A stretch of DNA of 64,000 nucleotides from Trichoplax adhaerens (Eukaryota > Animalia > Placozoa): NCBI RefSeq assembly GCF_000150275.1, contig NW_002060958.1:340374-404373 (forward strand), read 5' to 3'. The notes under the pieces were generated by a model that did not search any database, was not told where the DNA came from, and was given only the letters and a program-made list of their open reading frames with translations. The position numbers were made by a program, and so were the translations under genes. Positions 11,421 to 47,460 of the stretch are shown here, in pieces (within the stretch, counting starts at the first letter, position 1; each line of letters opens with the position of its first letter).

Positions 11421-13674
11421 TGACATGTTGACTAATTCCTTAAATTTGGGGATGGCAAAGGATGTCCATATAAAAAAAAAAATGGACAGATATATCGAAA
11501 ATAATTGCTGTGTGCTGTAACTATTCTTAGTGCACATTCAGTGTACAGCAGTGTACGTACAGTCCACGACTGCTTCGTCACAGTCCAAAATACTGCCATT
11601 CAAAATGCCCAATGGCGGTCCCATCGGACGGACAGATCCACGACATACTGCAGGACGATTAAAGGTATCTCTTTAAAGGTAGGGTTCAACTCCAACAAAA
11701 GAATTTTGGCCCAATCCATTATCCCCCACCTTGAATTAAATGGATTGATTTTTTCATACATTTACTTCATTTTGCCTTTCATTTCTTTCCACTTTAGCAG
11801 TAATGACAGCGGATTCCCATCGATTGTAACACCGTAATCGAATTCAATGCGATTGAAATCAAATCCTTGATTTTTCCTGCGATTGATCCAAATTGGCAAT
11901 ATTGATGTCGAGTTGGTGATCAGCGAAGGTCATCAACGCCTCAGGTATGGATTAATTATAAATACAATTCATCATCATCCAGACAGAAATGGCGATGCCG
12001 TAGTGAGAGGATAGTGTAGCTTCTTTCATCCTCTTAGTAAAGAATCATATTATAGATAAATTGTCTTATTTTCTCGTCTACTTTGATGGCTTGTGTATAG
12101 TACAGGAAGTTGAATGTCTGGCTGTCAAGTAGGAGATTTTATCATCACCGTGTGTTAATGTGTGTGTGTGTCTTTTTCCATTTCTATCCTTCCAGTAATC
12201 GTTATAACTTGATCTACTATAGCATACTATAGTGTGAATACTAGTCGTCATAAAAGTGGCGACATGAGAAATAGAGACTACAGTGGGTAAGACTTTTTGC
12301 TTTGTTTATTTCAGGACTTGCTATCTAATGGTCATATTCCACTCATCGCGCAGTTAGAATGGATGACTGATGATCCTACCGAGTTACTCAAGGTAAGGCA
12401 TCCTGCTACAGTGGGATGACTGTTTTGTTTTCTAATAATGAATTATACTCGTAGTAACTGAACTACCATAGTCTTTCAATCTTGATGAACGTAGAAGAAA
12501 GCGAGATAGTGCTTACTCTTGAATTAAACACCGCCACTATACGTAGTTCCAATTGCAGATTTGGTCATCAATGGCAATACTAGACGTGTAGTGGTTCATT
12601 TGAGTGTAGCAATGGACATTAATCTATATATAGCAAAACCATCAGATAGATTCTTTCTCTTGAAATAAATAAAACCCGTCACTACGCTAATTTCTAAGTA
12701 CACTTGATAATGCAAATATTATGTTGGTAGTGATCAATTTGAACACACAATTCGACCTGAAACTATAACATAATTAGGAAGTATTGTAGTTTATTTCTCT
12801 AGAAATAAACTTCCTCATTATATCAATTTCCAAGTGCAGCCTTGATAATGGAAATACTATTCGTGTCTTAGTCAATTTGAGTACTGTACTATACATAATT
12901 CGATATTAAGATATCAAAAATGACTATCAAATCGATTATTTTCCTAGGAGTAAGCTCTGTCGTTATACTGAGTTCCAAGCATAGCCTTGATAATAAAAAT
13001 GCTATACGCAAATTGGTTAATTTTTGTATACGATGATTGAATAGGAACGTATTCAAAGACTATCAAATAGATTACTGTCGATTATATAACACAGAATAGA
13101 CAAATCATGAATAGGAAAAGCTTCGAAATACACTACTATTACTACTGTCACTACTACTACTTCTCGTACAAACCCGTGTGGTAACTCCAAAGCTATAATA
13201 TGATAAATAAAAGATGAAATCCTGTACCCTTGATCTATGGATTGCTAGCCTAATTCAAACATTTCAACATGGTATTGCGATTAAAGAAATAAGAGTGATT
13301 TTATGCTAGTTCATTTAAATCAACATGATCATTAGTGATCATTAGATCATTACCATTCGATTATAATGTGCTCCATGAGTAAAGCATCCCTTAATTGTAT
13401 ATCATACTTGAATAAGAAATAAAATGTCAATCAATGAATAAAGTTTGTACGCGTTATACCTAATTGTTAATTTGTAATAGGTTTGGTAAGTACGAGTATA
13501 TGAGTAGTGCAATACTACATTGCAATTGGTATAAATTCATATTGCAATTTTTTACACTAGAAATTGACAGCTCGCACTTCTTCAACACTGCAGCAGCGTT
13601 CACTATAAACTGCCGTGTTTTCCTATCGGATATACCAATTCAAGAGTCATATCTTAAACTATATATTAAACAAT

Positions 13675-16162
13675 ATGGACAAGGAAGAACAACACTGGAT
13701 TATTCGCAGCTCAACATCGTACAACGAATCTTTCGGAGTGTTTTCAAGCCTGCGCCAAAGTGGAGTTTTATGTGATGTTATTATTGTGGTGGAAAATAGT
13801 AAAATACCTGCGCATCGATTAGTTTTAGCTTCTTACAGTCCATACTTTTATAGTATGTTTACCAGTAATATGATTGAAGCAACTCAACAAGAAATCACCA
13901 TTGGCAATATTGATGCTACAGCCGCTGAAAAATTGATCGAATTTGCATACGGTGGCCAAATCTACTTAAATAAAAATAATGTACAATCACTATTCACAGC
14001 CTCTGATCTATTGCAAATTGATTTAGTTAAAGAAGCTTGTCGTAATTTTATCATCAAACAAATGGATGCCAGTAATTGCTTAGGTATACGTGCCTTTGCT
14101 GATACATACTCATCTGAAGAATTAGTTTTATCTGCTAATCAATTTATCAATCGTAGCTTTGCTGAAGTATCTCATAGCGACGAGTATTTATCACTATCGG
14201 TCAAACAAGTACAAGAATTATTATTGCGTGATCAATTAAACGTAGCCAGTGAAGAATTAATTTTCGAAGCATTAATAGCATGGACACGCTATCGACTTGC
14301 TGAAAGGAAGCAGTACTTCAGTTATTTACTAAAGTTTGTACGACTACCACTACTGTCACCACAATACCTGGCGGAAAAAGTGGCTAATGTTGACCTTATT
14401 CGAAAAAATATTGAATGTCGTGATTTAGTAGATGAAGCCAAAGATGCTTACTTAATACCTAGTAAACGTTTATCAATTGAATCATATAAAATCAAGCCTA
14501 GATGCTTTACGGAAGAGTTAGGTTATATGTATGCTGTGGGTGGGTTAGCAGCGAACGGCAATTCCGTCAATGCTGTCGAATATTACGATAATGTCCGTGA
14601 CGAATGGTTTCCAGCACCATCACTACAGAGTATGAGAAGTAGGTTAGGAGTAACGGCTTTATGCAATTGCATTTATGCTATTGGTGGTGTCGACGGCACT
14701 GAACGTTTAAGTACCGTTGAAAGATTAGATATCTCTCATCAACAAGCTTCATGGGAATATCAAACGTCAATGCGAGTGCATAGAAGTGCTTTAGGTGCTG
14801 TCAATATTCAAGGCAGTATTTATGCAGTTGGTGGCTATGATGGCACAGCATCATTGAATAGGTACTTAAATTATTTGAAAAATTTCTTGTAACGTCTATC
14901 GCTATGCAGTCGATCATATCAAGACAGAACTTGAAATATCATTCTAGAAATGCAATCCTTGTTGTGATCATTACTATTTCTTTGAACGCCTACGATAGCA
15001 AATTAGTTGTAATCAATTGCAAAAGGATACTAAAGACAGTAGTATATAAGACCTGCTACGTAAAGAAAAAGAATATATGCTATATTTATAGCAATGCTTA
15101 GAAATACTTTAATAATAAACAGTGGCGCCGTCTAGAGAATGCCATCGATGAATTTTAGATTATACCGCAGCAAAAAGTAGTTTAATTAGATTACTTATTG
15201 CTTTGTAATTATTTGAAGGTTATCATAATCTGATTAAAATTGAATGAAGCATTAGTCTGGCAAGAGAATGAGATCGACAGGAATTAAATAGCTTTTGTCT
15301 ACAATTTTTTCATAAAGTTCATGTTACCGTAATTTAATTAACATGTTAATGTGATTCTTGAACCGTAGATTGGTCGTTAAATTTAATTAACATTGCTACT
15401 GAATTAGACAGTAAATGAGTACGCAAAGCATTCATTTAGTCATCACCTAATATATCTTTCTGTTGTTATCGTCTTCAATCAAACTAGTGTTGAGCGATAC
15501 GAATTTGGTAAAGATACGTGGAATTACGTTGCTCCAATGACAACATGTAGAAGCGCTGCAGGAGTAGCTTCTTTAGGAGGTCGAATTTATGCTCTTGGTG
15601 GCCATGACGGATTATCAATATTTAATACGGTCGAATTTTTTGATTTACGGGAAGCTTATTGGCGTCATATGGTGCCAATGGCCACTAAAAGGTTGAAACT
15701 ACGTAGACAGCACTGCCCATTAATTTTAGCCAAATCATACCAAAATTCCTTGCATTAAAACTGTGAAAGTATACTAGTAGTTAAAAGATAAGATCTAGCA
15801 GTATCTTTAACTTAAGGGATGTATTTTTCTATTTTCATAGGTGCAGACATGGCGTCGCTACTCTAGAAAATAAGATATACGTTTGCGGAGGTTATGACGG
15901 TAGATCTTTTCTAAACACCGTGGAGTGCTTTGATCCCATCGCTGACAAATGGACTTTTGTAGCTCCTATGTCAATAAGAAGAAGCAGAGTAGCTATGGTA
16001 GCATTAGGTGGCGTACTATTTGTTGTTGGAGGATATAATGGATTTTGCAACTTAAGAAGCGTGGAATGTTATGATCCTAAGACCAATAAGTGGTCATATG
16101 TTAGTGATATGTCACAGCATGAAGGTGGCGTTGGAATTGTAGCTACTCCTCGTTTTCATTAG
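13675..16162 (+). CDS. KLHL18: Kelch-like protein 18-like (BTB-BACK-6xKelch CUL3 adaptor); 3 coding exons, probable 5'UTR exons near 11.9 and 12.3 kb
   Basis: Exons 13675-14861, 15488-15691, 15841-16162. [26 protein letters not shown], a BACK domain, and Kelch repeats with KLHL18-type motifs [41 protein letters not shown]. Confidence 0.9.
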
Positions 16163-22759: not shown

Positions 22760-23810
22760 GATTGCTTTATCTCTCTGCTTAATTCAGTAATCAAACAGCT
22801 TAAGATTTCTATTGGAGCTACTCTTTTTTCCCTAGATGATGCTCGGCATGGCTGACTGGTGTTGTCGACTGTCGGGGATATGGAGCATTTCAACTTGATG
22901 AATTCATAAATGCTAAATTAAATAAATTAAATTAAATAATAAAGCAACCTAAAGTTTCTATTAGAGCTACTCTTTTTGGCCTAAATGATTGTTGGCATGG
23001 CTGACTGGTGTTGTTGACTATCGGGGACATGGAGCATTTCAACTTGATGAATTCATTAATACTAGAATAATTTAAATTAAATAATAAAGCAACCTAAAAT
23101 TTCTATTGGAGCTACTCTTTTTGGCCTAAATGATTGTTGGCATGGCTGACTGGTGTTGTCGACTATCGGGGACATGGAGCATTTCAACTTGATGAATTCA
23201 TTAATACTAGAATAATTTAAATTAAATAATAAAGCTACCTAAAGTTTCTATTGGAGCTACTCTTTGTGGCCTAGATGATATTCGGCATGGCTGACTGGTG
23301 TTGTCGACTATCGGGGACATGGAGCATTTCAACTTGATGAATTCATTAATGCTTAATTAAATATATATTAAATTAAATAATAAAGCAACCTAAAGTTTCT
23401 ATTGGAGCTACTCTTTTTGCCCTAAATGATTGTTGGCATGGCTGACTGGTATTGTCGACTGTCGGGGACATGGAGCATTTCAACTTAATGAATTCATTAA
23501 TACTAGAATCGCTTGATGTTTCTGCTTAATTAAATAAATTAAATTAAATAATAAAGCAAGCTAAAGTTTCTATTAGAGCTACTCTTTTTGGCCTAAATGA
23601 ATGGTAGCATGGCTGACTGGTATTGTCGACTGTCGGGGACATGGAGTGTTTCAACTTAATCAATTTATTAGTACTAGGATCACTTGATGTTTCTGCTTAA
23701 TTCAATAATCAAGTAAACTAAGGTTTCTATTGGAGCTACTCCTTTTGGCCTAAATGATTGTTGGCATGACTGACTGGTGTTGTTGACTGTTGGGGATATG
23801 CAACGTTTAG
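22760..23810. repeat. Tandem array of ~7 copies of a ~145-175-bp unit (GC-richer core plus AT-rich linker)
   Basis: TTTCTATTGGAGCTACTCTTTT...GGCATGGCTGACTGGTGTTGTCGACT.TCGGGGACATGGAGCATTTCAACTT, with units starting at ~22803, 22951, 23095, 23241, 23392, 23564, 23720. Confidence 0.95.
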
Positions 23811-24159
23811 ACGCTGTAGCAGAATACAAACTATCAACGATCACCGAATTATTTTGTTGCTAGATCAAATCATAGCATTCACTCATCGAAAATCGATCTG
23901 ATGTTATAGTTTACATCAGATACAAAAGGTGTATTATATGGCGATAGAGTATGTCTGAAGAAAGACAACTTCAGTGATGTTGTCATTTTTTACTTCTATC
24001 TAACAGTCAATCGGAAATGCAATGGTAGGATTACAACACCATCAGGGGAGTAATCTATAACTGTATCATGGACAGAAATAATATAAAGTAGAGCGTGCAA
24101 TAAAAGATCAAGTAAATATTGACACGCTCCTCACGCTTTAGATAGTCGCCAGTTAAAGA

Positions 24160-24945
24160 AATAACTATCTATAGGAAATAATTCAATCCTATCATGCAAA
24201 TCTGCAAGGTGATGAATAACTGATTATACTAATAAAGCCAGTATAAATTCAAGAAATTTCGATCTACAGGAAAAAAGTTCCATCCTAGAAGGGGATTAAC
24301 AGTTGATTACTAATAGAACCTGTATTAATTCGAGAAACTACTGGCGGCAGGAATAAACACAATCATACAAGGGGATTATTGACTGATTACAAATAAAACT
24401 ACTATAAATTCAAGAAGTAACAGTCTACAGGATGAAGCTCAATCCAATCACAAAGGCGATTAATGACTAGTTACTAATAAAATCAGTACAATTCAAAGAA
24501 ATAGCAGCCTACAGGATAAAGCTTAATCCTATCACAAAGACGATTAACGACTTGTTACTAATAAAATCAGTATCAATTCAAGAAATGATTCTCTAAAAGG
24601 ATAAAGCACAACTCCATCATGCAATCCTAAAAGATGCTTATAAACTGATTACGAATACATTCAGCATCAATTCAGGAAATAACTGTCTGAAAGAACAAAG
24701 TGCAATCCTATCATGCAATCCTAAAAGGTGATTAACAACTGATTAAGAATATAATCAGCATCCATTCAAGAAATAACTGCCAAAGGGAAAGCTCAATCTA
24801 ATCATACAATCCTAATAGGTGATGAATAAGCGATTCATTATAAATAAAATCAGTATAAACTCCAGAGATAATTGACTAAAGGGGAAGACCACAATCCTAG
24901 AATACGAGCTAAATAGATGATGAGCAGCTGATGACAAATAAAACC
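24160..24945 (+). repeat. Degenerate tandem array of ~80-97-bp units (~9 copies) directly upstream of murA
   Basis: Recurrent CAATCCTATCA...GATTA..ACTGATTAC.AATAAAATCAGTAT.AATTCAAGAAAT..CTACAGGATAAAG; no long ORF in the track. Confidence 0.85.
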
Positions 24946-25210
24946 TACAGTCTATTAATTATAATATAATTGAATTGTATATTGTTATAAACTGTTAGAA
25001 CTACCACTTTCAGCGAAGGGTGTGGCTTGTAAGCAATGATTCCGACATTTTCCTTCTGAGTTAAAGGAACTTGTGAGACAAATACTTGTCTTTAGGGGTT
25101 TATGGGGGTTTCCCTTGGAAACCATTGATGACATACGAGACAGTCAGCCGCTGTACCAATATTGACTATCTTGGGCCCTGTAACTTACAAGGCAACACTT
25201 AGACGTCGTT

Positions 25211-26485
25211 ATGGAGAGAATTTTAATTCAGGGTGGAATCCATCTTTTTGGAGAAATAGCAATAAGTGGCTCAAAGAATAGTTCGTTACCTTTAATGGCC
25301 GCTAGCCTTTTATCGAATCAAACTTTACAACTTACCAATATTCCTAAGCTATCTGACATAACAACAATGAAGAACTTGTTAGTGAATCTTGGGACAGTGA
25401 TAGAAATCGTCGACCAAGAAGATAACGGTTTACAGCTAAAATTATCCTCTGCTGACATTCAAAACTATTTTGTACCCTATGAGATTGAAAGTAAAATAAG
25501 AGCATCTATTTGGCTTCTTGGACCATTATTGACTAGGTTTGGCAAAGCAACAGTATCATTTCCAGGAGGTTGTGAGATTGGTGCTAGACCAATCGATTTA
25601 CATATAGCCGTTATGCAAGCGTTAGGAGCAAAAATAATAATGCACCACGATTGTATTGATGCTCATGTAGATGAATGTTTAGTAGGGTGCAATTTTTCTT
25701 TTACCAAAGTATCCGTTGGAGCAACTATAAATGCAATTTTAGCTGCAGTTTTAGCAAAGGGTGAGACCAATTTGTTTCACTGTGCAAGAGAACCAGAGAT
25801 AGCTGATTTATGCCGTTGTTTAAATCAAATGGGAGCAGAGATCAAGGGTATTGGTACGACAGAATTGACAATTATTGGAAAAGATAGGCTCGATGGTACT
25901 AGCTATAAGGTAATGCCAGATAGGATAGAAGCAGGAACTTACATGATAGCGGCAGCAGTAACTAGAGGAGATGTCAAGTTACTGGGCATTGAATGTGACT
26001 TAATTGAAAATTTAGTAATGAGAATGAAAGCCGCTGGTGTAAGCATTCTACAGGGTAAGAACTTTATACGAGTGAAACATCAAGGTCCTTTAAAGCCTGT
26101 TAATATTTCAACACAGCCTCATCCTGGTTTCCCGACTGATTTACAAGCTCAATTCATGTGCTTGATGACCTTGGCGGAAGGATTATCAACTATTTCGGAG
26201 ACTATTTTTGAAAATCGGTTTATGCATGTTCGTGAGTTGTGTAAAATGGGAGCTAACATAACTATTGATGGCCATGATGCGGTTGTACAAGGAGTCCAAT
26301 CTCTAGTAGGGGCTGAAGTTATGGCAAGTGATTTAAGAGCTTCGGCAGGCTTAGTGATTGCAGGACTTTGTGCCAGAGGTGAAACAACCATTAGAGGGGT
26401 GCATCACTTAGATAGGGGATATCAGTCGCTTGAAAAGAAATTATCACAGTGTGGGGCTAAAATTTCGAGAATCACGGGCGATTAA
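25211..26485 (+). CDS. murA: UDP-N-acetylglucosamine 1-carboxyvinyltransferase (MurA), intronless, Rickettsiaceae-like
   Basis: 424-aa ORF with GSKN (K22/N23), RAS (R91), PGGCEIGARP (C115, R120), SVGAT, AREPEI, DRIEAGTY, PGFPTDLQAQF (D305), IFENRFMH, DLRA, HLDRGY (E. coli numbering). Rickettsia-type strings are RASIW, SVGATINAILAAVLA and GAEVMASDLRAS. Confidence 0.97.
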   Translation: MERILIQGGIHLFGEIAISGSKNSSLPLMAASLLSNQTLQLTNIPKLSDITTMKNLLVNLGTVIEIVDQEDNGLQLKLSSADIQNYFVPYEIESKIRASIWLLGPLLTRFGKATVSFPGGCEIGARPIDLHIAVMQALGAKIIMHHDCIDAHVDECLVGCNFSFTKVSVGATINAILAAVLAKGETNLFHCAREPEIADLCRCLNQMGAEIKGIGTTELTIIGKDRLDGTSYKVMPDRIEAGTYMIAAAVTRGDVKLLGIECDLIENLVMRMKAAGVSILQGKNFIRVKHQGPLKPVNISTQPHPGFPTDLQAQFMCLMTLAEGLSTISETIFENRFMHVRELCKMGANITIDGHDAVVQGVQSLVGAEVMASDLRASAGLVIAGLCARGETTIRGVHHLDRGYQSLEKKLSQCGAKISRITGD

Positions 26486-26950
26486 GTATCACTTTCATCA
26501 ATAAGAGATTCAAAATACAAAGATTTTAATCGTATTTAATGGAAGACAGCGAAACCAATAACTCTACAATTGGCTTGAATGGAGAATTAAAAGTACAGCA
26601 CAGATGCAGAAATAATTTATATTCTGCGGTATACAACCGAAGAGAGTGTCAAAGGTGAATACGTCATATAGTAATCCTGACGTAGCATTAAAACTGAAGT
26701 AAAATTATTTATTACCCGTAATACTTAATTTTTAATACCTTTCTAAAATTTTTCAAGAAGGTATGAATAAGTTTTATTAATTTCTGTAGCAACCAAGTAG
26801 AAACCATATTGCAGTATCACAGAAACTAGAAATTATTAGTGCCAATTTAGTTCTTCTCGCTTTATGTGGTCTATTCATCAATATCCATCACTGGTTGGAT
26901 AATTCAGATTTGAATGCTGTGCCTAAATAAGTTCGTGAGCAAAATCATAA

Positions 26951-29900
26951 TAGCGTGCACCTTGATTACAGCTTAAACCAATAGACGGTAAAATATCTAA
27001 TAGACTGAAATTTAAATGTTGCCTGAGTTAAGCCTATCTGTAATGTAATTATTGAGGTGACAACCGTAAATCTAAGAAAAGCTCTTCAATTCCTTCAAAT
27101 TAGACAATATAAATATTAGCTCATGCTATCTATCGTAGTATCTTTGCAAAGAGTCATTGTACGGAAATAAATCAATTTACTTATAACAACTGCAATAAAC
27201 TTTTGAAAAGGTTCCAAACTTGTACGCCTATCGCTAATTTCGATCATGATCTGAAAGTGTACTTGTGTGAAACAATTTATTATGAGTGTTGTTGTCGTCT
27301 CTTATACGTATTAGCTAGAATATTGTTTACTGCAACAGGTTTATTGAATTACTATGTAACTAATAACAAACTACTTTCAATGAATTACTATAAAAATTAG
27401 AGTATAAGCATAATAGGTGATTCCTATGTCTTTCTATTAGATATTGTAACAAATAGATATTGAAACCAACTATCGAAACGTCTATAGGTAATTTGTGAAA
27501 ATCTACGTGCCTGAGGTACCGGTATATAAATAAAATATCAATTAGTAAAGTAGAACATAACTGGATCAAAGTCTTAATTAAATAGCAAGGAGAGTTCATT
27601 TCCTGAATAAGAATTGTCAATATCTTATAAACAAACTTCGCAAGTCTAGCTGTAGTAAAGAGTAGAAAAACATGCAGACTGTCTATAAATGTAGTCTACA
27701 AATATTTTTATTGAAGCGTACTTGTGTAATGAACATACATATCTTAATTTAGGTTACCTGTATCGTTTTAAATTTCAAATTTATCGACCAACTCGAGTCA
27801 TTTAAATGGGATCAATTGCATAATATATGGGCATGCTGGAATAAATGATTAATGTCATAGTAGATTTCACTTTACTTTGTGATTAATTTTACTACACCAA
27901 GTTCTAATACTCGTGCACTATGGAAATAGTTATTAAAAGATTACTTAATCTCTAGTAATATTACACTATCGTTAGACACTGTAAAAATAGGAAGTTCTTT
28001 TATTGTACAATATCCCTAAATGCATATACCATTGGTGTATAGAGTAGAAATATCAAAGCAAAATCTAGTTGGTATTGCTAGGCTTACCTGTCTGCGATTA
28101 ATTTCGGTTATAAAAGCGTAAATTAAATTTAGACAACGGATGCCCTATTTTATGATAACTTGCCACTATAATAGGTTAGTAAATACTATCTTTTCTACAA
28201 GTATGTTATTACAGCGACTAATGACGATGATTCCTGCAATCATTCATACTGAAGCTGAAATTGCTTTAGCAATGCTTGCTTCTACTTGGCTACTTGACAG
28301 CATTCGTAATTTTGCATACACGAGCTACTTAAAAAGTCGAATTCTTCTAGAATAGATTTTTGACAACGCTCAAATATCATGATGACTTTATTTTATTAGT
28401 ATAATCTTACACCCTAAAACAAATATAAGAAGAATAGAGTATAACATAGATGATACAAACATAACTATTTAAGTATTAAGATTACTATACTACGTACTTA
28501 TATAGCTTACAATAACGACAAGAAATAAAAATAATTCCCTATCAACTAATGATAAACAACATATAAATCTACGTAGTAAGATGTTAATCTATATTAACAT
28601 AAGAAAGCGTCTTAATGGTTTGTGGTATTCTCGGTTGTATGCTTGTATTATCTTACAGCCATACATATTGTCTGAGAAATAGGTTGAAATTCGATTCCTC
28701 GCTTAAAAAATATTTTATAACCTCGTCTATATTGAGTAATGTTAAGAATTAAGATCTTATCGATTGTTTCTTTATCGATCTCTAAAATTTTGGAACTTTT
28801 TAAGGATAGATATGAAACTAAATAGACGATTGAGGCATGGGTAATACTCGAATTAAGCGATGAAAATGTATGAAATCTATAAACGAGATCGAACGTAACA
28901 ATATAATGTACGAATAGACCTGTTATGATAAAAATGTAAAATGCTACTTGTAGCTGACTAATTGATATCTTAGGTGTGTAATACTTGAGATAGTTGTATA
29001 ATTCTGCAGGAATACCAGTGCATGGATGAGTTCTACTTTCATATATATCGTAGTAGGTTTGACATAGTTTAGCTTGGAAATAATGAGAACCGTTGTTGCC
29101 TAAGTGAGCTTGGATTTTCTCTTTGAGTATGTTATGTCCGTCGTTAAAAGTACATTTTACACAACCGAAGCCACATTGCAATAATTTGACTGTAACTTTA
29201 TTACTGTCTGACTCAATATATGAGTATTGAAAAACGATGCTCGAAGTACCATTAATTGCGTGATGGTGGTCATCTCTTAGACTTCGTTTAATGTAATCCA
29301 CAATACTAAGTTTGATAGTTTCTTCATTTAACATTTCTGGGGTATCAATTTCTACGTCATTGATACTGCCAGTTTGAGTGATGATAAAATCGACTCGCAA
29401 AATACCTTGCTTACTATCCAAGATTGTTTGAATATTTTCTTCTATTCTTGGCTTTACATCAATAATTCTTTGACATATAAGAGGACCTCGATCAGAGTAA
29501 GCGCTCAATAACAAATAGATAAAATGCACGTATGGAATTACAATAATAATAATTTCATTGAAATAGCTAGAAAATGCGAAAATAAATGTTATAACAGTAA
29601 TAGCGATTCTAGAAATCAATTGTAAACCGCAAGCTAATAGGGATGCAGTAAAAAAGACAAAAAAGAGTGAGTAGAACGTCATAAAGGCTAATACGAGAGG
29701 ATGTATTAAAGGCCAATTTGTTATCTTGGGAAGTAAATTTCGTTTTAATTTGAATGTTAATACTTCAGAAATAAAAAGTAAAGCTCGTAAAAGTCCAATA
29801 AGTCCAAATATGCAAAATGGCAAGCAGATTATAAATGTTAAGAGATCTTTGATAAATTGAAATAGTTGTAGAGAAAGTAAATGGTGTTTCATATCGACAA

Positions 29901-31853
29901 GAATGATGTTAATTTGGTGATAGGACTGTCGCTCATAACTTGGCGTTAAGTACATTTGTCTAGTTAGTAGCTCTTGATCATTGTCGTCAATTTGGTTATA
30001 CGAATTATTTGAATCACTGGTCAATACCTGTTTCAAATGAGCTAAACTTAAAATCAATATGTATGGCCCGCAACATACTGCTATAATAAATCCTATATCT
30101 TTAACGTCATGAAGTTTATCCATTTTATGAAATCGAGGTTTAAAAAAAAAATGCATTGAATTTCGTTGCAAAAGAAGAGAAAGAAATCCCAATCCCGAAG
30201 ATAGAATAACCAGTAATAAGAATATAATACAATGACTAATTTCTAGCCAATGGTAGTTAGTAGTATAGTCGGAAAAATGGAAATAGTTAACATTTTGAAA
30301 GTGTAACGTATCTAAGATACGAACCTTGACCATTTTCGTAAGATTTGTTGAATTTGGTAACATACTATCACTACGCTGGAGGTATGTTTCCCCGATTTGG
30401 TGAGACGATCCAGGCGATGATTGATAAGTTTCTTCTTGAATCAATCCTTGATGCGAATTATTAGTTTGTAGTAGGTTTAATGAATGATCTTGACTCTCGT
30501 CAGAGGTAAGATGAGATTTATGTTCGCAATATCTATTGAAGGAAGATTTTATTCGGGTTATGTGCTACATATACTGTAATAACACTTTGGATCTGAACTA
30601 GGTATGGACTGTAACTGTAAAAAATTAACATTTCTATTTTGAGAAAACAAGTTTAGTTTGCGCTGGGTACTGAACATTGATGTAATTAGTTGGAATGCTT
30701 CTGAATAGATAAACAATAAATAATAGATTGCTTATAGACCGATAATACATAAAGTTCGTTACTGAATTTAAGGTTAACTTTCTACCGCTTTGTAAAATTT
30801 GTGACTTACCGATAATTACCTAATTCTTTCAAGAAGTTGTTAATAAGTTTATCTAACATAGTAACAGCTATAAGGGAACTGATTATTATGGAAATTATTT
30901 GTACCATACGACCTGTCAATTTCTGTTTCCCTAGAATTAGGCATGTACTAATGTTAATTTTTGCAGCAACTATTTCTCTGTTACAGCATGAATAAGGTAT
31001 AGGATGATGTAAAAGTTCCTGTTTTCTATTAAAGCGTCGCCAAAATATTGTAGGACAATATCTACCAAAACAACCTCCACTTGAGTTTGTAAATTTTAAT
31101 AATGCCTCAAAAATGATATACTTTCTTTTGGAATCACTTGTTAGTCGAGCATAGCAACCTCGGCTTGATTCAATAAGATTTAAACTCTGTCGATGTACGA
31201 AAACTGAATATAGACTTAAGCTTGTAGCAATATAATCGACCGGTAAAGAAATCAGAGCCCAACTAAAATCGTCTTTAACCCAGCCATAGAAGTCATAATT
31301 TTTAGAATCGTTGTGTAGATTCTGACCATTTATTATCAGATTAAAATACACTATTTTAGTTTCTTTTGCTTCGATTTTTTGTCGAAATAGGGCATAATGA
31401 TGTGTATCATCATACACACTTAGAGAGCATTTGGAAGTGTTAAAAGACTTCTGTATCACTTGATCGGATGAATTTATAGACGCTGCTTGGATCAAGCAAA
31501 CGACAAATACTACATAATGAAGAGATCGATTTCTAAACAAACCTAAAGTCATCGTCCTGTAAGATATAATTGAATAATATATTCACATTACTTTAGTGTT
31601 CTGATATAATTACAATAAAGAATTATTACGTGTTAGAATTTTGTGTGCTTTTACTACAATATTAGCGATTACAAAATTAGCATTTCGTCGTATTTACTCT
31701 AAATGTCTACGCCTAAGTCTATTCGATCATTATAGGTATCTATTTATTCGCTAAATACAAGCCAGCTACAGTAAGAGATTTTAATGTCCCTAAAAATAAA
31801 ATTAGAGGCAATCCGTAGAAGATAATGCGTAAGATTTGGAGAATGCAACATTA
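26951..31853. repeat. Left arm of a ~5-kb near-identical inverted duplication (partner 39852-45123)
   Basis: Reverse-complement match from TAGCGTGCACCTTG (26951) to GAATGCAACATTA (31853). Spurious ORFs 28140-28355 and 43380-43595 are identical. Confidence 0.95.
28648..31552 (-). CDS. Uncharacterised multi-pass membrane protein, cluster copy A (~875 aa; exons 30810-31552 and 28648-30532)
   Basis: Signal-peptide-like N-terminus, Cys-rich ectodomain with N-glycosylation sequons, and a phase-2 GTAAGT..TAG intron at 'YR'. About 8-9 hydrophobic segments, CGFGCVKC, and C-terminal YRRGYKIFFKRG. A 5'UTR intron ends 4 nt before the ATG, with its donor at ~32052. Confidence 0.9.
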
Positions 31854-44414: not shown

Positions 44415-45479
44415 ACAGTCCGCATGTTTTTCTACTCTTTACTACAGCTAGACTTGCGAAGTTTGTTTATAAGATATCGACAATTCTTATTCAGGAAATG
44501 AACTCTCCTTGCTATTTAATTAAGACTTTGATCCAATTATGTTCTACTTTACTAATTGATATTTTATTTATATACCGGTACCTCAGGCACGTAGATTTTC
44601 ACAAATTACCTATAGACGTTTCGATAGTTGGTTTCAATATCTATTTGTTACACTATCTAATAGTAAGACATAGAAATCACCTATTATGCTTATACTCTAA
44701 TTTTTATAGTAATTCATTGAAAGTAGTTTGTTATTAGTTACATAGTAATTCAATAAACCTGTTGCAGTAAACAATATTCTAGCTAATACGTATAAGAGAC
44801 GACAATAACACTCATAATAAATTGTTTCACACAAGTATACTTTCAGATCATGATCGAAATTAGCGATAGACGTTCAAGTTTGGAACCTTTTCAAAAGTTT
44901 ATTGCAGTTGTTACAAGTAAATTGATTTATTTCTGTACAAGATGAAAGCATGAGCTAATACTTATATTATCTACTTTGAAGGAATTGAAGAGCTTTTCTT
45001 AGATTTACGGTTGTCACCTCAATAATTACATTACAGATAGGCTTAACTCAGGCAACATTTAAATTTCAGTCTATTAGATATTTTACCGTCTATTGGTTTA
45101 AGCTGTAATCAAGGTGCACGCTACTTAGTAAACGTGATAATAAATCGTATTTCAATAGTCTTATTAAATTAATAATCATGATTCACATGTAATTGATTAA
45201 TATGCAGTGCTCTCAGTACCCCGCCGGTTTAGTTGGCTCAGGTCGTGTCATGCTATCTACAAATTTATCTCAGATGCGCAATAAAGTAACTAAGGCAGTT
45301 CTTAAATTCGCGTTCATGCGACTAAAATAACTAACTGAATTGCGTTCATTGCTACGATAGATATATACCAACAATGGCGAGATGCACTTTATATATGAAC
45401 TTGACCGTATGCGAAATCGGTCATTTTGCAAACTGCTCTTTAAGATTGCATGATGGGATTGTACATTATCCTTTTAGGC

Positions 45480-45978
45480 AATGATTTGTTGAATTGATAA
45501 CGATTTTATTAGTAAGAAGTCGTTAATCTTCTCTGTGATAGGATTGAGCTTTATCCTGTAGAATGTTACTTCTTGAGTATATGCTGATTTTATTGATGAC
45601 TAGTCATTAATCGCTTTTGTGATTGGATTGAGCTTTATTCTGTAAACTGTTACTTCTTGAATTTATACTGATTTTATTGGTATCTAGTCGTTAATCGCTT
45701 TTGTAATAGGATTAAGCTTTATCCTGTAGACTGTTACTTCTAGAATTTATAGTAGTTTTATTTGTAATCAGTCAATAATTCCCCTTGTACTCGTATGATT
45801 GTGTTTTTTTCGTGGCGCCAGTTGTTTTTCGAATTTATACAGGTTCTGTTAGTAATCAATTGTTAATCCCCTTCTGGGATGGAACTTTTTTCCTGTAGAT
45901 AGAAATTTCTTGAATTTATACTGGTTTTATTAGTATAATCAGTTATTCATTACCTTACAGATTTACATGATAGGATTG
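45480..45978 (-). repeat. Inverted copy of the 80-97-bp array found upstream of murA
   Basis: Unit-by-unit reverse-complement match to ~24184-24590 (e.g. GATGGAACTTTTTTCCTGTAGAT versus ATCTACAGGAAAAAAGTTCCATC). Confidence 0.9.
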
Positions 45979-47460
45979 TACTTTTTCCTTCATAACTGAA
46001 AATCGATTACAGACAGCCAGCGTAAGATATTAAATGGATTTTATTTTAGTATTTCTTTTCTATATACTAACGGATCTGCACATTTAAGGATCTTATACAA
46101 TTAATAGTATAAAAATGATCCCCTACCTTTGCGGTATCGATCGATGATGGAGTATTCTAATAAGCTATCTTCTAGTAACAATTTCGATGTAGCTGAAGCA
46201 TTAGAATCGCGTGTTGTAAAGTTAACTATAAATAAATTAAAACATATTATAGTAATAAAGGTTAATTTTTAGAATTCCCTTTTAATCTTTTACATTTTCT
46301 AATAATATTATAGCTTTAAAAGTAACTTAATTTAGTTTAAATTATAGTAAGATTTTACTTAGTATTCTAGTATATTGTAAACTCGACTACTTTATTCTGG
46401 TTAACATTTAACAGCATACAGTAACATAATTTTGTTAAGAATTATACAATGTAAGATTATTGTAATCGTATATAAATCGTGAATTTTGCTGTAATAAGTA
46501 GATTGTCAGATAGTCAGATAGTCCTTGGTAGTTAGACGAACCTAACTTCTGTAATAAAGTGAAATTTGCAAGAAACTGTAGTTCTTGATTTATTGTTTTG
46601 AAGATCACTTTATCACAATTATAAACTAAGCAACATATTTAGTTAGTATAGTATTCATGCTGCAATTCTGATAAACTGGCAGCTAATTTGAGTTATAAAA
46701 TATAGTAAAAGTTATGTTACTTTGTGATAGAATACAGTATAGTCCCGAACATTATGATCTAGGTTCTAATTGAAGATTTTTGGCTTGTCTTAATATTTTT
46801 TATAGCTATATGCTATATATCCGTAGATGAATACAATTTGTAGTCAAGTTTCGACTATTGCATTACTAATTTATTAACATTCTGGAATCTAGAGTATAAT
46901 TTATCTGATCATATATTTTAATTGCTATTTTTACTTAGAATACTTTAGAGTGATAATTCGATTATTTGGTACCGCCAGCTACTCTATGTAGCAAATAAAA
47001 AGTGACATAATTCAGTAGTTTAGTGAGATCAAGATAGTGTGGTAGTCGATAACGATTAGGATTTTCCTTAAATCATAAGTATATCTCTTTAATTTGATGA
47101 TTTGGTTAGTCAAGGCAGTAATTCTGCCTTTTGTTAATCTTCTAACTAATTTTGTAAAATTCGTTATCACAAATGATAATAAACTGGTATTTCCACCAAA
47201 TTTATTTTGTGTTGGGCTTCAAAAGCTCTTAGTTTCTAATAATTTTTTTCGTCCATTGTTGCTCTATTATACTAATTATTCCTACCCGCACAATCAGATA
47301 TGTTATTAATTGAAATAAAGCCCGGAGCTTTAGCTGTCCGATAAATTTGAAGGCAAATTAAACTAATTCGTGTACGGTAAGTAATTTATACAAATATATC
47401 CTAATAATATACAGTAGATTTTTGTAGTAGATTATGGGCAATAATTTTGAATATGTAGTA

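Follow-up and report, generated by a model that had tools for sequence, protein, structure and literature searches.

The window analyzed here, a stretch of 64,000 nucleotides from the placozoan Trichoplax adhaerens (assembly GCF_000150275.1, contig NW_002060958.1, positions 340,374 to 404,373, forward strand), belongs to a 1.63-Mb scaffold and contains, at window positions 25211-26485 (+), an intronless open reading frame (ORF) for a complete MurA of 424 amino acids (aa), the enzyme of the first committed step of peptidoglycan biosynthesis. This murA, a gene of rickettsial type, is truly inserted in the nuclear genome, and it is transcribed with eukaryote-style 3' ends. The explanation toward which we lean is that a single gene passed to the nucleus from a donor on the Rickettsiaceae side, that it is expressed and probably active, and that it would be kept, under relaxed or shifted constraint, for a modulation exerted from the host side.

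A complete MurA that is probably still active

The ORF starts with ATG, and the coordinates above include its stop codon (ORF listing). Its product scores 546.7 bits against the NCBIfam profile TIGR01072 (murA), for which the cutoff is 392.7, and aligns with profile positions 1-416 of 416, which identifies it as a full-length member of this equivalog family; it also matches Pfam PF00275 (EPSP_synthase) at 324.7 bits and the solved MurA structures at E values of ~1e-120. It is the single murA match in the Trichoplax assembly (105.6 Mb, 1414 contigs). The AlphaFold2 (AF2) model of the protein has a mean predicted local distance difference test (pLDDT) score of 91.2 and a predicted template modeling (pTM) score of 0.91. 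When superposed on the MurA structures of E. coli, E. cloacae, and H. influenzae (TM score of 0.95-0.96, root mean square deviation of 1.6-2.2 Å), it displays the two-domain fold of enolpyruvyl transferases. The Cys loop, residues 119-125, is the low-confidence part of the model, as is expected of a flexible element.

All of the catalytic and substrate-binding residues are kept, namely, K22, N23, R97, C121, R126, D310, R336, D374, L375, R376, and R402, in 11 columns that are invariant in 227-228 of 228 bacterial homologs. We take these residues to correspond, based on alignments to the solved structures and on the usual E. coli numbering, to K22, N23, R91, C115, R120, D305, R331, D369, L370, R371, and R397 of the E. 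coli enzyme. The initial annotation, drawn from the DNA letters, had described a full-length, intronless MurA with every catalytic residue, a description that our profile and column analyses bear out; what it called Cys115 is indeed the conserved catalytic Cys but carries the number 121 in the protein itself, 115 being the E. coli position. The odd residues that it had pointed to (ESKIRAS and FPGGCE) are real departures from the family near the active-site loop, V93E, M96I, L117F, and A122E, with R94S being less unusual.

The alignment with bacterial MurA starts at residue 1 of the protein, and the open frame runs only nine codons 5' of the ATG, so this exon encodes no targeting extension; the product would be a cytosolic enzyme without an N-terminal extension. 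Based on the residues retained, we propose that MurA is probably still active and converts UDP-N-acetylglucosamine (UDP-GlcNAc) and phosphoenolpyruvate (PEP) into enolpyruvyl-UDP-GlcNAc, and the Cys form of the loop predicts that the enzyme would be sensitive to fosfomycin.

A single-gene insertion in a host chromosome

The sequence contains no N between 15 and 35 kb of the window. In two independent DNA runs with two organism labels, contigs X1 (24382-26951) and X8 (24375-26896) span both murA junctions at a depth of 36-45; the depth of the host flanks is 25-60. The gene is common to T. adhaerens (H1) and to Trichoplax sp. H2, whose protein RDD39940.1, encoded on a 244-kb contig of a separate H2 assembly, is identical to it at 423 of 424 positions.

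Blastn homology to L002, the locus of the closest bacterial relative, extends over 1348 nt with 79.9% identity and delimits a minimal transferred fragment at 25194-26539 (+), with 17 nt upstream and 54 nt downstream of the gene. The donor-type neighbors cmk, rpsA, folD, and suhB left no trace in the murA flanks by tblastn. The transferred piece is trimmed almost exactly to the murA coding sequence, and the event is a single-gene transfer. On the upstream side, host tandem repeats with units of 84-94 bp (24153-24940; Tandem Repeats Finder, own-genome DNA search, and blastn) are related to an array at 45439-45989. On the downstream side, host DNA is duplicated in inverted orientation: one arm of this segmental duplication (26951-31853; blastn) begins 465 nt past the murA stop, and its partner (45123-39852) is 95-98% identical. 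The duplication edge, 26951/45123, is sharp, the first 149 bp being 100% identical, and the loose DNA-contig ends at 26951 carry the exact junction sequence of the partner copy, showing that the contig breaks at this position are repeat induced and not chimeric. We considered whether the paralogous copy at 44.4-46.0 kb could represent an empty site, and rejected it given that the adjoining 316 bp are unrelated to the 2 kb around murA; since this copy is not a clean empty site, it does not date the insertion.

These results uphold what had been read from the letters about the setting, a join to host genes and repeats without gaps and no bacterial genes next to murA; the host elements are a Kelch gene, the tandem repeats, and a host family, and the contigs of two strains show no chimeric join at either end. 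The missing Shine-Dalgarno sequence, also put forward at that stage, is a correct observation but an uninformative one, because the bacterial relatives have no clear one either.

A message completed by host sequence

One RNA contig of run X18 (2411 nt, depth of 45.7) covers 25151-27552 (+) and defines a murA transcript with a 5' untranslated region (UTR) of ~60 nt, the coding sequence, and a 3' UTR of ~1.07 kb. Run X18 is RNA according to a label that is itself a guess, and X20, a metatranscriptome of the other strain, is definitely RNA. The depth of X18 is zero at 23394-24575 and at 27728-28318, and such zero-depth stretches on either side of the contig form a pattern that is not expected of DNA. 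RNA contigs of X20 cover 25177-25385 and 25675-27211. No spliced upstream exon was seen in the murA RNA contigs, and the 85-nt gap in an X20 contig is an indel rather than an intron, because DNA of the same strain shows the gap too. In the organism-B runs, an 85-bp deletion lies within the murA 3' UTR (26896-26982), in DNA as well as in RNA.

The initial annotation had proposed to check poly(A), and the RNA contigs end just past AATAAA motifs. The proximal poly(A) signal candidate (27194-27199, +) precedes the end of the X20 contig at 27211 by 12 nt, and the distal candidate (27529-27534, +) precedes the end of the X18 contig at 27552 by 18 nt. The murA 3' UTR enters the segmental duplication and the distal AATAAA lies inside it, which means that the murA message is completed by host sequence. 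Assembled RNA contigs give neither strand nor expression level. The junction-spanning DNA, the RNA contigs, the presence in two strains, and the H2 gene model together establish that the gene resides in the host nucleus and is expressed.

A donor on the Rickettsiaceae side

Among 8000 scored homologs, the best is P0002, from an uncultured bacterium of the Rickettsiaceae side, with 77% identity; next come "Rickettsiaceae bacterium" metagenome-assembled genomes (64-70%) and Tisiphia (58-59%), and the MurA proteins of Rickettsiaceae-type genomes are 57-63% identical to the nuclear one. In the maximum likelihood (ML) tree, Trichoplax MurA is the sister of P0002/L002 with a support of 100/99, deep inside the clade to which the named Rickettsiaceae sequences belong, a placement that agrees with the rickettsial type assigned at the outset. 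The gene order at P0002 (L002) is cmk-rpsA-murA-folD-suhB, the same as at P0003, P0006, and P0008, and the L002 RpsA shares 88% identity with its counterpart in genome G282, 72% and 66% with those in two further genomes of this side, and 52-53% with those in G103 and G388. The closest bacterial MurA cluster also includes P0123, whose contig in the NCBI assembly GCA_024449895.1 is 6.6 kb long and has a bacterial gene order, a context which raises the possibility that the closest known relative of the donor lives in the sequencing project of another eukaryote.

To trace the lineage of the resident symbiont, we compared with 401 Rickettsiales genomes a MurD whose gene lies on a bacterial contig (1.76 kb) within the assembly. 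Genome G103 is the closest, with 88% identity, and a group of its relatives reaches 54-67%. The MurA of this Midichloriaceae type (G103 and relatives) is only 30-32% identical to the nuclear MurA, G103 itself reaching 32%, against 77% for L002, so the residents (the rickettsial endosymbiont of T. adhaerens [RETA], Aquarickettsia, and Grellia) are not its closest relatives. The nuclear DapF, encoded on another scaffold, is 76% identical to that of G282 and 30-32% identical to those of G103 and G388. These identities show that the donor was a G282-like lineage of the Rickettsiaceae side, not the Midichloriaceae now resident, and that nuclear murA and dapF come from one and the same lineage. The gene had been called symbiont derived, which is apt as regards its rickettsial type but does not extend to the resident Midichloriaceae symbiont as the donor.

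A former or occasional Rickettsiaceae partner is plausible in view of a preprint (bioRxiv 10.1101/2025.02.27.640636) that reports Aquarickettsia and Grellia in H1/H2 and, for some placozoans, either Megaira or a "Rickettsiaceae-1" of sporadic occurrence, and that describes symbiont replacement as frequent. No ortholog from other placozoan genera is present among the 8000 scored homologs, in which the only closer relative, P0002, stands in a bacterial context, and none of the sampled sequence words was found in the organism-C runs, word sampling being a procedure that proves nothing.

Two further observations concern these gene families. The assembly contains two dapF genes, the nuclear one (G000:C1412:3473077-3473856, L004) and one on a 1.2-kb contig (G000:C290:227-1042, L005), the product of which is only 30% identical to the nuclear DapF and presumably belongs to a resident bacterium. 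Also, the MurA of the Midichloriaceae-side genomes G103, G388, G313, G285, and G340 (L122-L126) is ~30-32% identical to the Rickettsiaceae type; with two such MurA types, one of the two lineages appears to have had its murA replaced in the past.

A proposed host-side modulation and its rivals

The explanation that we favor would run as follows. The donor of murA, which is of the lineage that also supplied the nuclear dapF, would have been a former Rickettsiaceae partner. The insert sits with host repeats on one side and the segmental duplication on the other, and its RNA contigs end just past host-derived AATAAA signals. Cytosolic MurA would make enolpyruvyl-UDP-GlcNAc, for which rickettsial MurB would be the only enzyme around able to use the product. 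A host complement of murB to murF, which the initial annotation had proposed to look for, did not appear: murB was not found in the host assembly, nor was a nuclear Mur ligase, the sole Mur ligase match in the assembly being on the 1.76-kb symbiont contig. With neither enzyme in the host, the product of murA would be usable only by bacteria, and its most likely role is therefore to modulate, from the host side, how much peptidoglycan precursor intracellular rickettsiae receive. Such a role would probably have been gained with the former Rickettsiaceae partner and later kept under relaxed or shifted constraint.

Several observations weigh against this explanation, beginning with the symbionts themselves. 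Both H2 symbionts have their own MurA (peg.440 in G. incantans and peg.148 in R. eludens; supplementary tables of Gruber-Vodicka et al. 2019), and the same tables list Ddl, DapF, LysA, LdcA, and UppS for G. incantans and Ddl and DapF for R. eludens. The MurA of G103 is likewise intact (412.8 bits), so a step lost by the symbiont, as in mealybugs, is not found here. The suggestion in the initial annotation that the resident symbiont might lack murA, and that the host gene might supply the missing step, is thereby not supported: having a MurA of their own, the symbionts lack nothing at this step that the host gene could provide. The host MurA thus neither completes the symbiont pathway nor supplies a host one. 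Location would be a further difficulty, in that Grellia inhabits the lumen of the endoplasmic reticulum and MurA appears to have no signal or transit extension.

The pace of evolution is the second difficulty. The end branch of Trichoplax MurA measures 0.35 substitutions per site, versus 0.06 for its sister, and Tajima tests with eight outgroups count 37-56 unique changes versus 9-17 (p of 5e-3 to 2e-8), for example, 51:11 and 37:16. Eleven of the 49 polarized lineage-specific replacements (22%) fall in columns that are at least 95% conserved, whereas 157 bacterial lineages show 5.7% (Fisher p = 1e-4). The Trichoplax proportion is not significantly under the 30% expected for random placement (p = 0.16). 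One of the altered positions, G147D, is Gly in 228 of 228 homologs. A G367R allele is segregating (window 26309) in runs of both organism labels, at a position that is Gly in 219 of 228 homologs. Some of the length of this branch may have built up in the donor, before the transfer, and a dN/dS value (ratio of nonsynonymous to synonymous substitution rates) for the whole path says little on the host phase.

The strongest competitor, which we judge somewhat improbable although it has to be taken seriously, is that murA is an expressed relic, which came with or served the former Rickettsiaceae partner and is now effectively neutral, transcribed by virtue of its position, and heading to decay. The lineage-specific replacements are 4-5 times those of the bacterial sister, their nearly random spread over conserved and variable columns is what such a relic would display, and so is the segregation of G367R; moreover, the resident symbionts do not need the gene and the host has no downstream pathway. 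Among the 127 columns that are at least 95% conserved in 228 homologs, 11 are altered in Trichoplax, which ranks 2 of 229, and none in the bacterial sister. The altered columns, among which the strictly invariant Gly is counted, include Y148C, V93E, M96I, R396G, and Y398H, and near-invariant residues are thus not retained throughout. However, these 49 replacements came with no internal indel, frameshift, or internal stop over 1272 nt, the sole length change being a stop two codons early. In neutral simulations with 45-55 replacements, the probability of encountering no stop is 0.02-0.07 with indels uncounted, and it would be lower with them; indels are frequent in the murA flanks between the two strains. 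The preservation of all 11 catalytic residues also speaks against a relic, as do the defined transcript ends with poly(A) signals in two strains and the variants between H1 and H2 runs, which lean synonymous (4 synonymous versus 2-3 nonsynonymous) and are too few to decide.

An intact frame is unlikely under pure neutrality and argues for selection, and the spread of the replacements argues for relaxed constraint: the frame and the chemistry-bearing residues are protected, and much else is free to change. The pairwise dN/dS to L002 is 0.09-0.18, a value that includes bacterial time. We dropped a branch-specific dN/dS by three-point decomposition, which returned negative or huge values; the outgroup dS is saturated, so the host share of dN/dS is not separable. 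With respect to other variants, S419L is segregating in a variable column (window 26466), and the GenBank H2 protein differs instead by I10N. Two short-contig MurA proteins near the G282 clade, P0043 (13/47) and P0049 (10/43), display the same excess of changes in conserved columns as Trichoplax, and may represent decaying or transferred copies elsewhere or poor assemblies.

A more speculative proposal, to which we attach little weight, is that a toolkit of murA, dapF, and lysA from a lost Rickettsiaceae partner now acts on its Midichloriaceae successors, or that the rapidly evolving MurA has taken on a new substrate or regulatory role in the cytosol of an animal. As to lysA, it is said to have been described by Kamm in 2019 as a further host-encoded cell wall gene of Trichoplax. 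If the proposal were true, it would represent a host-side control module outliving symbiont turnover.

We find it slightly less credible still that the enzyme is neofunctionalized, V93E, M96I, L117F, A122E, and other changes being adaptations to a new substrate, a regulator, or a role confined to the host, for example, the synthesis of another enolpyruvyl sugar or the buffering of UDP-GlcNAc. This would suit an acceleration confined to one lineage in which the frame and the catalytic residues are kept, as well as the position of several deviations flanking the Cys loop and the R97 helix, and a fold search showed that the same fold includes enolpyruvyl transferases with other substrates, such as NikO. 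However, the residues that contact UDP-GlcNAc and PEP in solved MurA structures are all unchanged, many deviations are conservative (A88V, V102L, V128I, and R345K), and the saturation of outgroup dS leaves no basis for a signal of positive selection. The functional shift that the initial annotation had seen in the unusual residues is compatible with the acceleration and would be equally explained by relaxed constraint.

Finally, a wrong join of symbiont DNA to a host scaffold can practically be dismissed and was rejected: bacterial contigs such as C609 and C290 are present in the assembly, but short-read contigs of two strains span both junctions at host-like depth, the H2 assembly, made separately, has the same gene, the repeats in the flanks are specific to the host and recur as paralogous copies 20 kb off, the 3' UTR runs in host sequence, and DNA identity to the nearest bacterium is only 80%, the MurA of the resident symbiont type being 32% identical.

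Neighborhood of the insert

The upstream neighbor of murA is a multiexon host gene of the BTB-BACK-Kelch type (13615-16162, +; Pfam BTB, BACK, and Kelch matches), with extra Kelch-motif ORF pieces at 15537-15758 and 15920-16162. The convergent downstream neighbor is a two-ORF host unit (598 aa and 248 aa; 28648-31552, -), identified from the ORF list and the paralog map, whose proteins have no Pfam match. The inverted segmental duplication carries this unit, and about five copies of it occur in the window, the more diverged ones at ~33.8-37.0, 48.8-52.5, and 57.0-58.3 kb, and an RNA contig with a depth of 233.7 covers 28357-28900 in its region. In a field of 145-bp tandem repeats at 23205-23699, 493 bp are replaced by 20 other letters in the organism-B RNA run X20 only, and this replacement is absent from the DNA contigs.

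Earlier reports and comparable systems

The gene's existence and the main host-control hypothesis were already published in 2013, as the initial annotation had suspected for the former. Driscoll et al. (2013, Genome Biol Evol, PMC3641634) listed 12 bacterial genes, MurA and DapF included, that lie on large T. adhaerens scaffolds of eukaryotic origin, noted that murA is intronless, regarded both as rickettsial transfers "possibly reflecting RETA transfers," and speculated that tissue-specific host expression of murA and dapF could restrict symbiont growth. Our analysis deals with the same gene in the same genome and shares this host-control idea; it differs in that the resident symbiont (RETA) was suggested as the donor, whereas murA and dapF trace here to the Rickettsiaceae side, and the transcript ends, the insert boundaries, the rate acceleration, and the loss of conserved residues are not in that paper. 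In the literature on the function of nuclear murA, we found nothing beyond citations of this 2013 report.

The closest parallel in animals is the mealybug-Moranella mosaic (Bublitz et al. 2019, Cell, PMC6838666), in which an animal expresses alphaproteobacterial peptidoglycan genes from its own nucleus and these act on an endosymbiont that did not donate them. The mealybug genes fill symbiont gaps and their MurF protein was shown inside Moranella, whereas the symbionts of Trichoplax keep their own murA and only one or two steps are host encoded. In Volvox carteri (Kawafune et al. 2015, PMC4324946), the Rickettsiaceae dcw genes murB, ddlB, and ftsQ, derived from an aquatic Rickettsiaceae endosymbiont, reside in the host nucleus and persist in strains without the donor, and Trichoplax murA is cited there as a parallel. 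In Volvox, truncation or interruption affects most of the copies, and that work did not look at their expression, whereas the Trichoplax copy is complete and transcribed. The aphid transfers ldcA, amiD, and rlpA (see also PMC8689515) likewise give host-encoded enzymes of peptidoglycan metabolism that are bacterial in origin, and they are presumed to influence symbiont walls. They act in recycling or lysis, contain introns, and are expressed specifically in bacteriocytes, in contrast to the intronless Trichoplax murA, which encodes the first committed biosynthetic step.

In the fungus gnat Pseudolycoriella hygida, a 192.8-Mb contig is annotated with a MurA (P0076) nearly identical to that of Tisiphia. 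It could represent a second case of rickettsial DNA inserted in an animal chromosome, or contamination that was merged into a scaffold.

To the 2013 report, our results add that the donor was of the Rickettsiaceae type and not the resident symbiont and that the gene has evolved unusually fast. The mismatch between the donor of murA and dapF and the present residents fits the repeated symbiont replacement described in placozoans (bioRxiv 10.1101/2025.02.27.640636), and turns the fate of the gene into a testable question, namely, whether it outlasts its donor because it still acts on the successors, or whether decay is under way. Such a comparison is now feasible in placozoan lines that carry Megaira or that have no Rickettsiales at all (H11).

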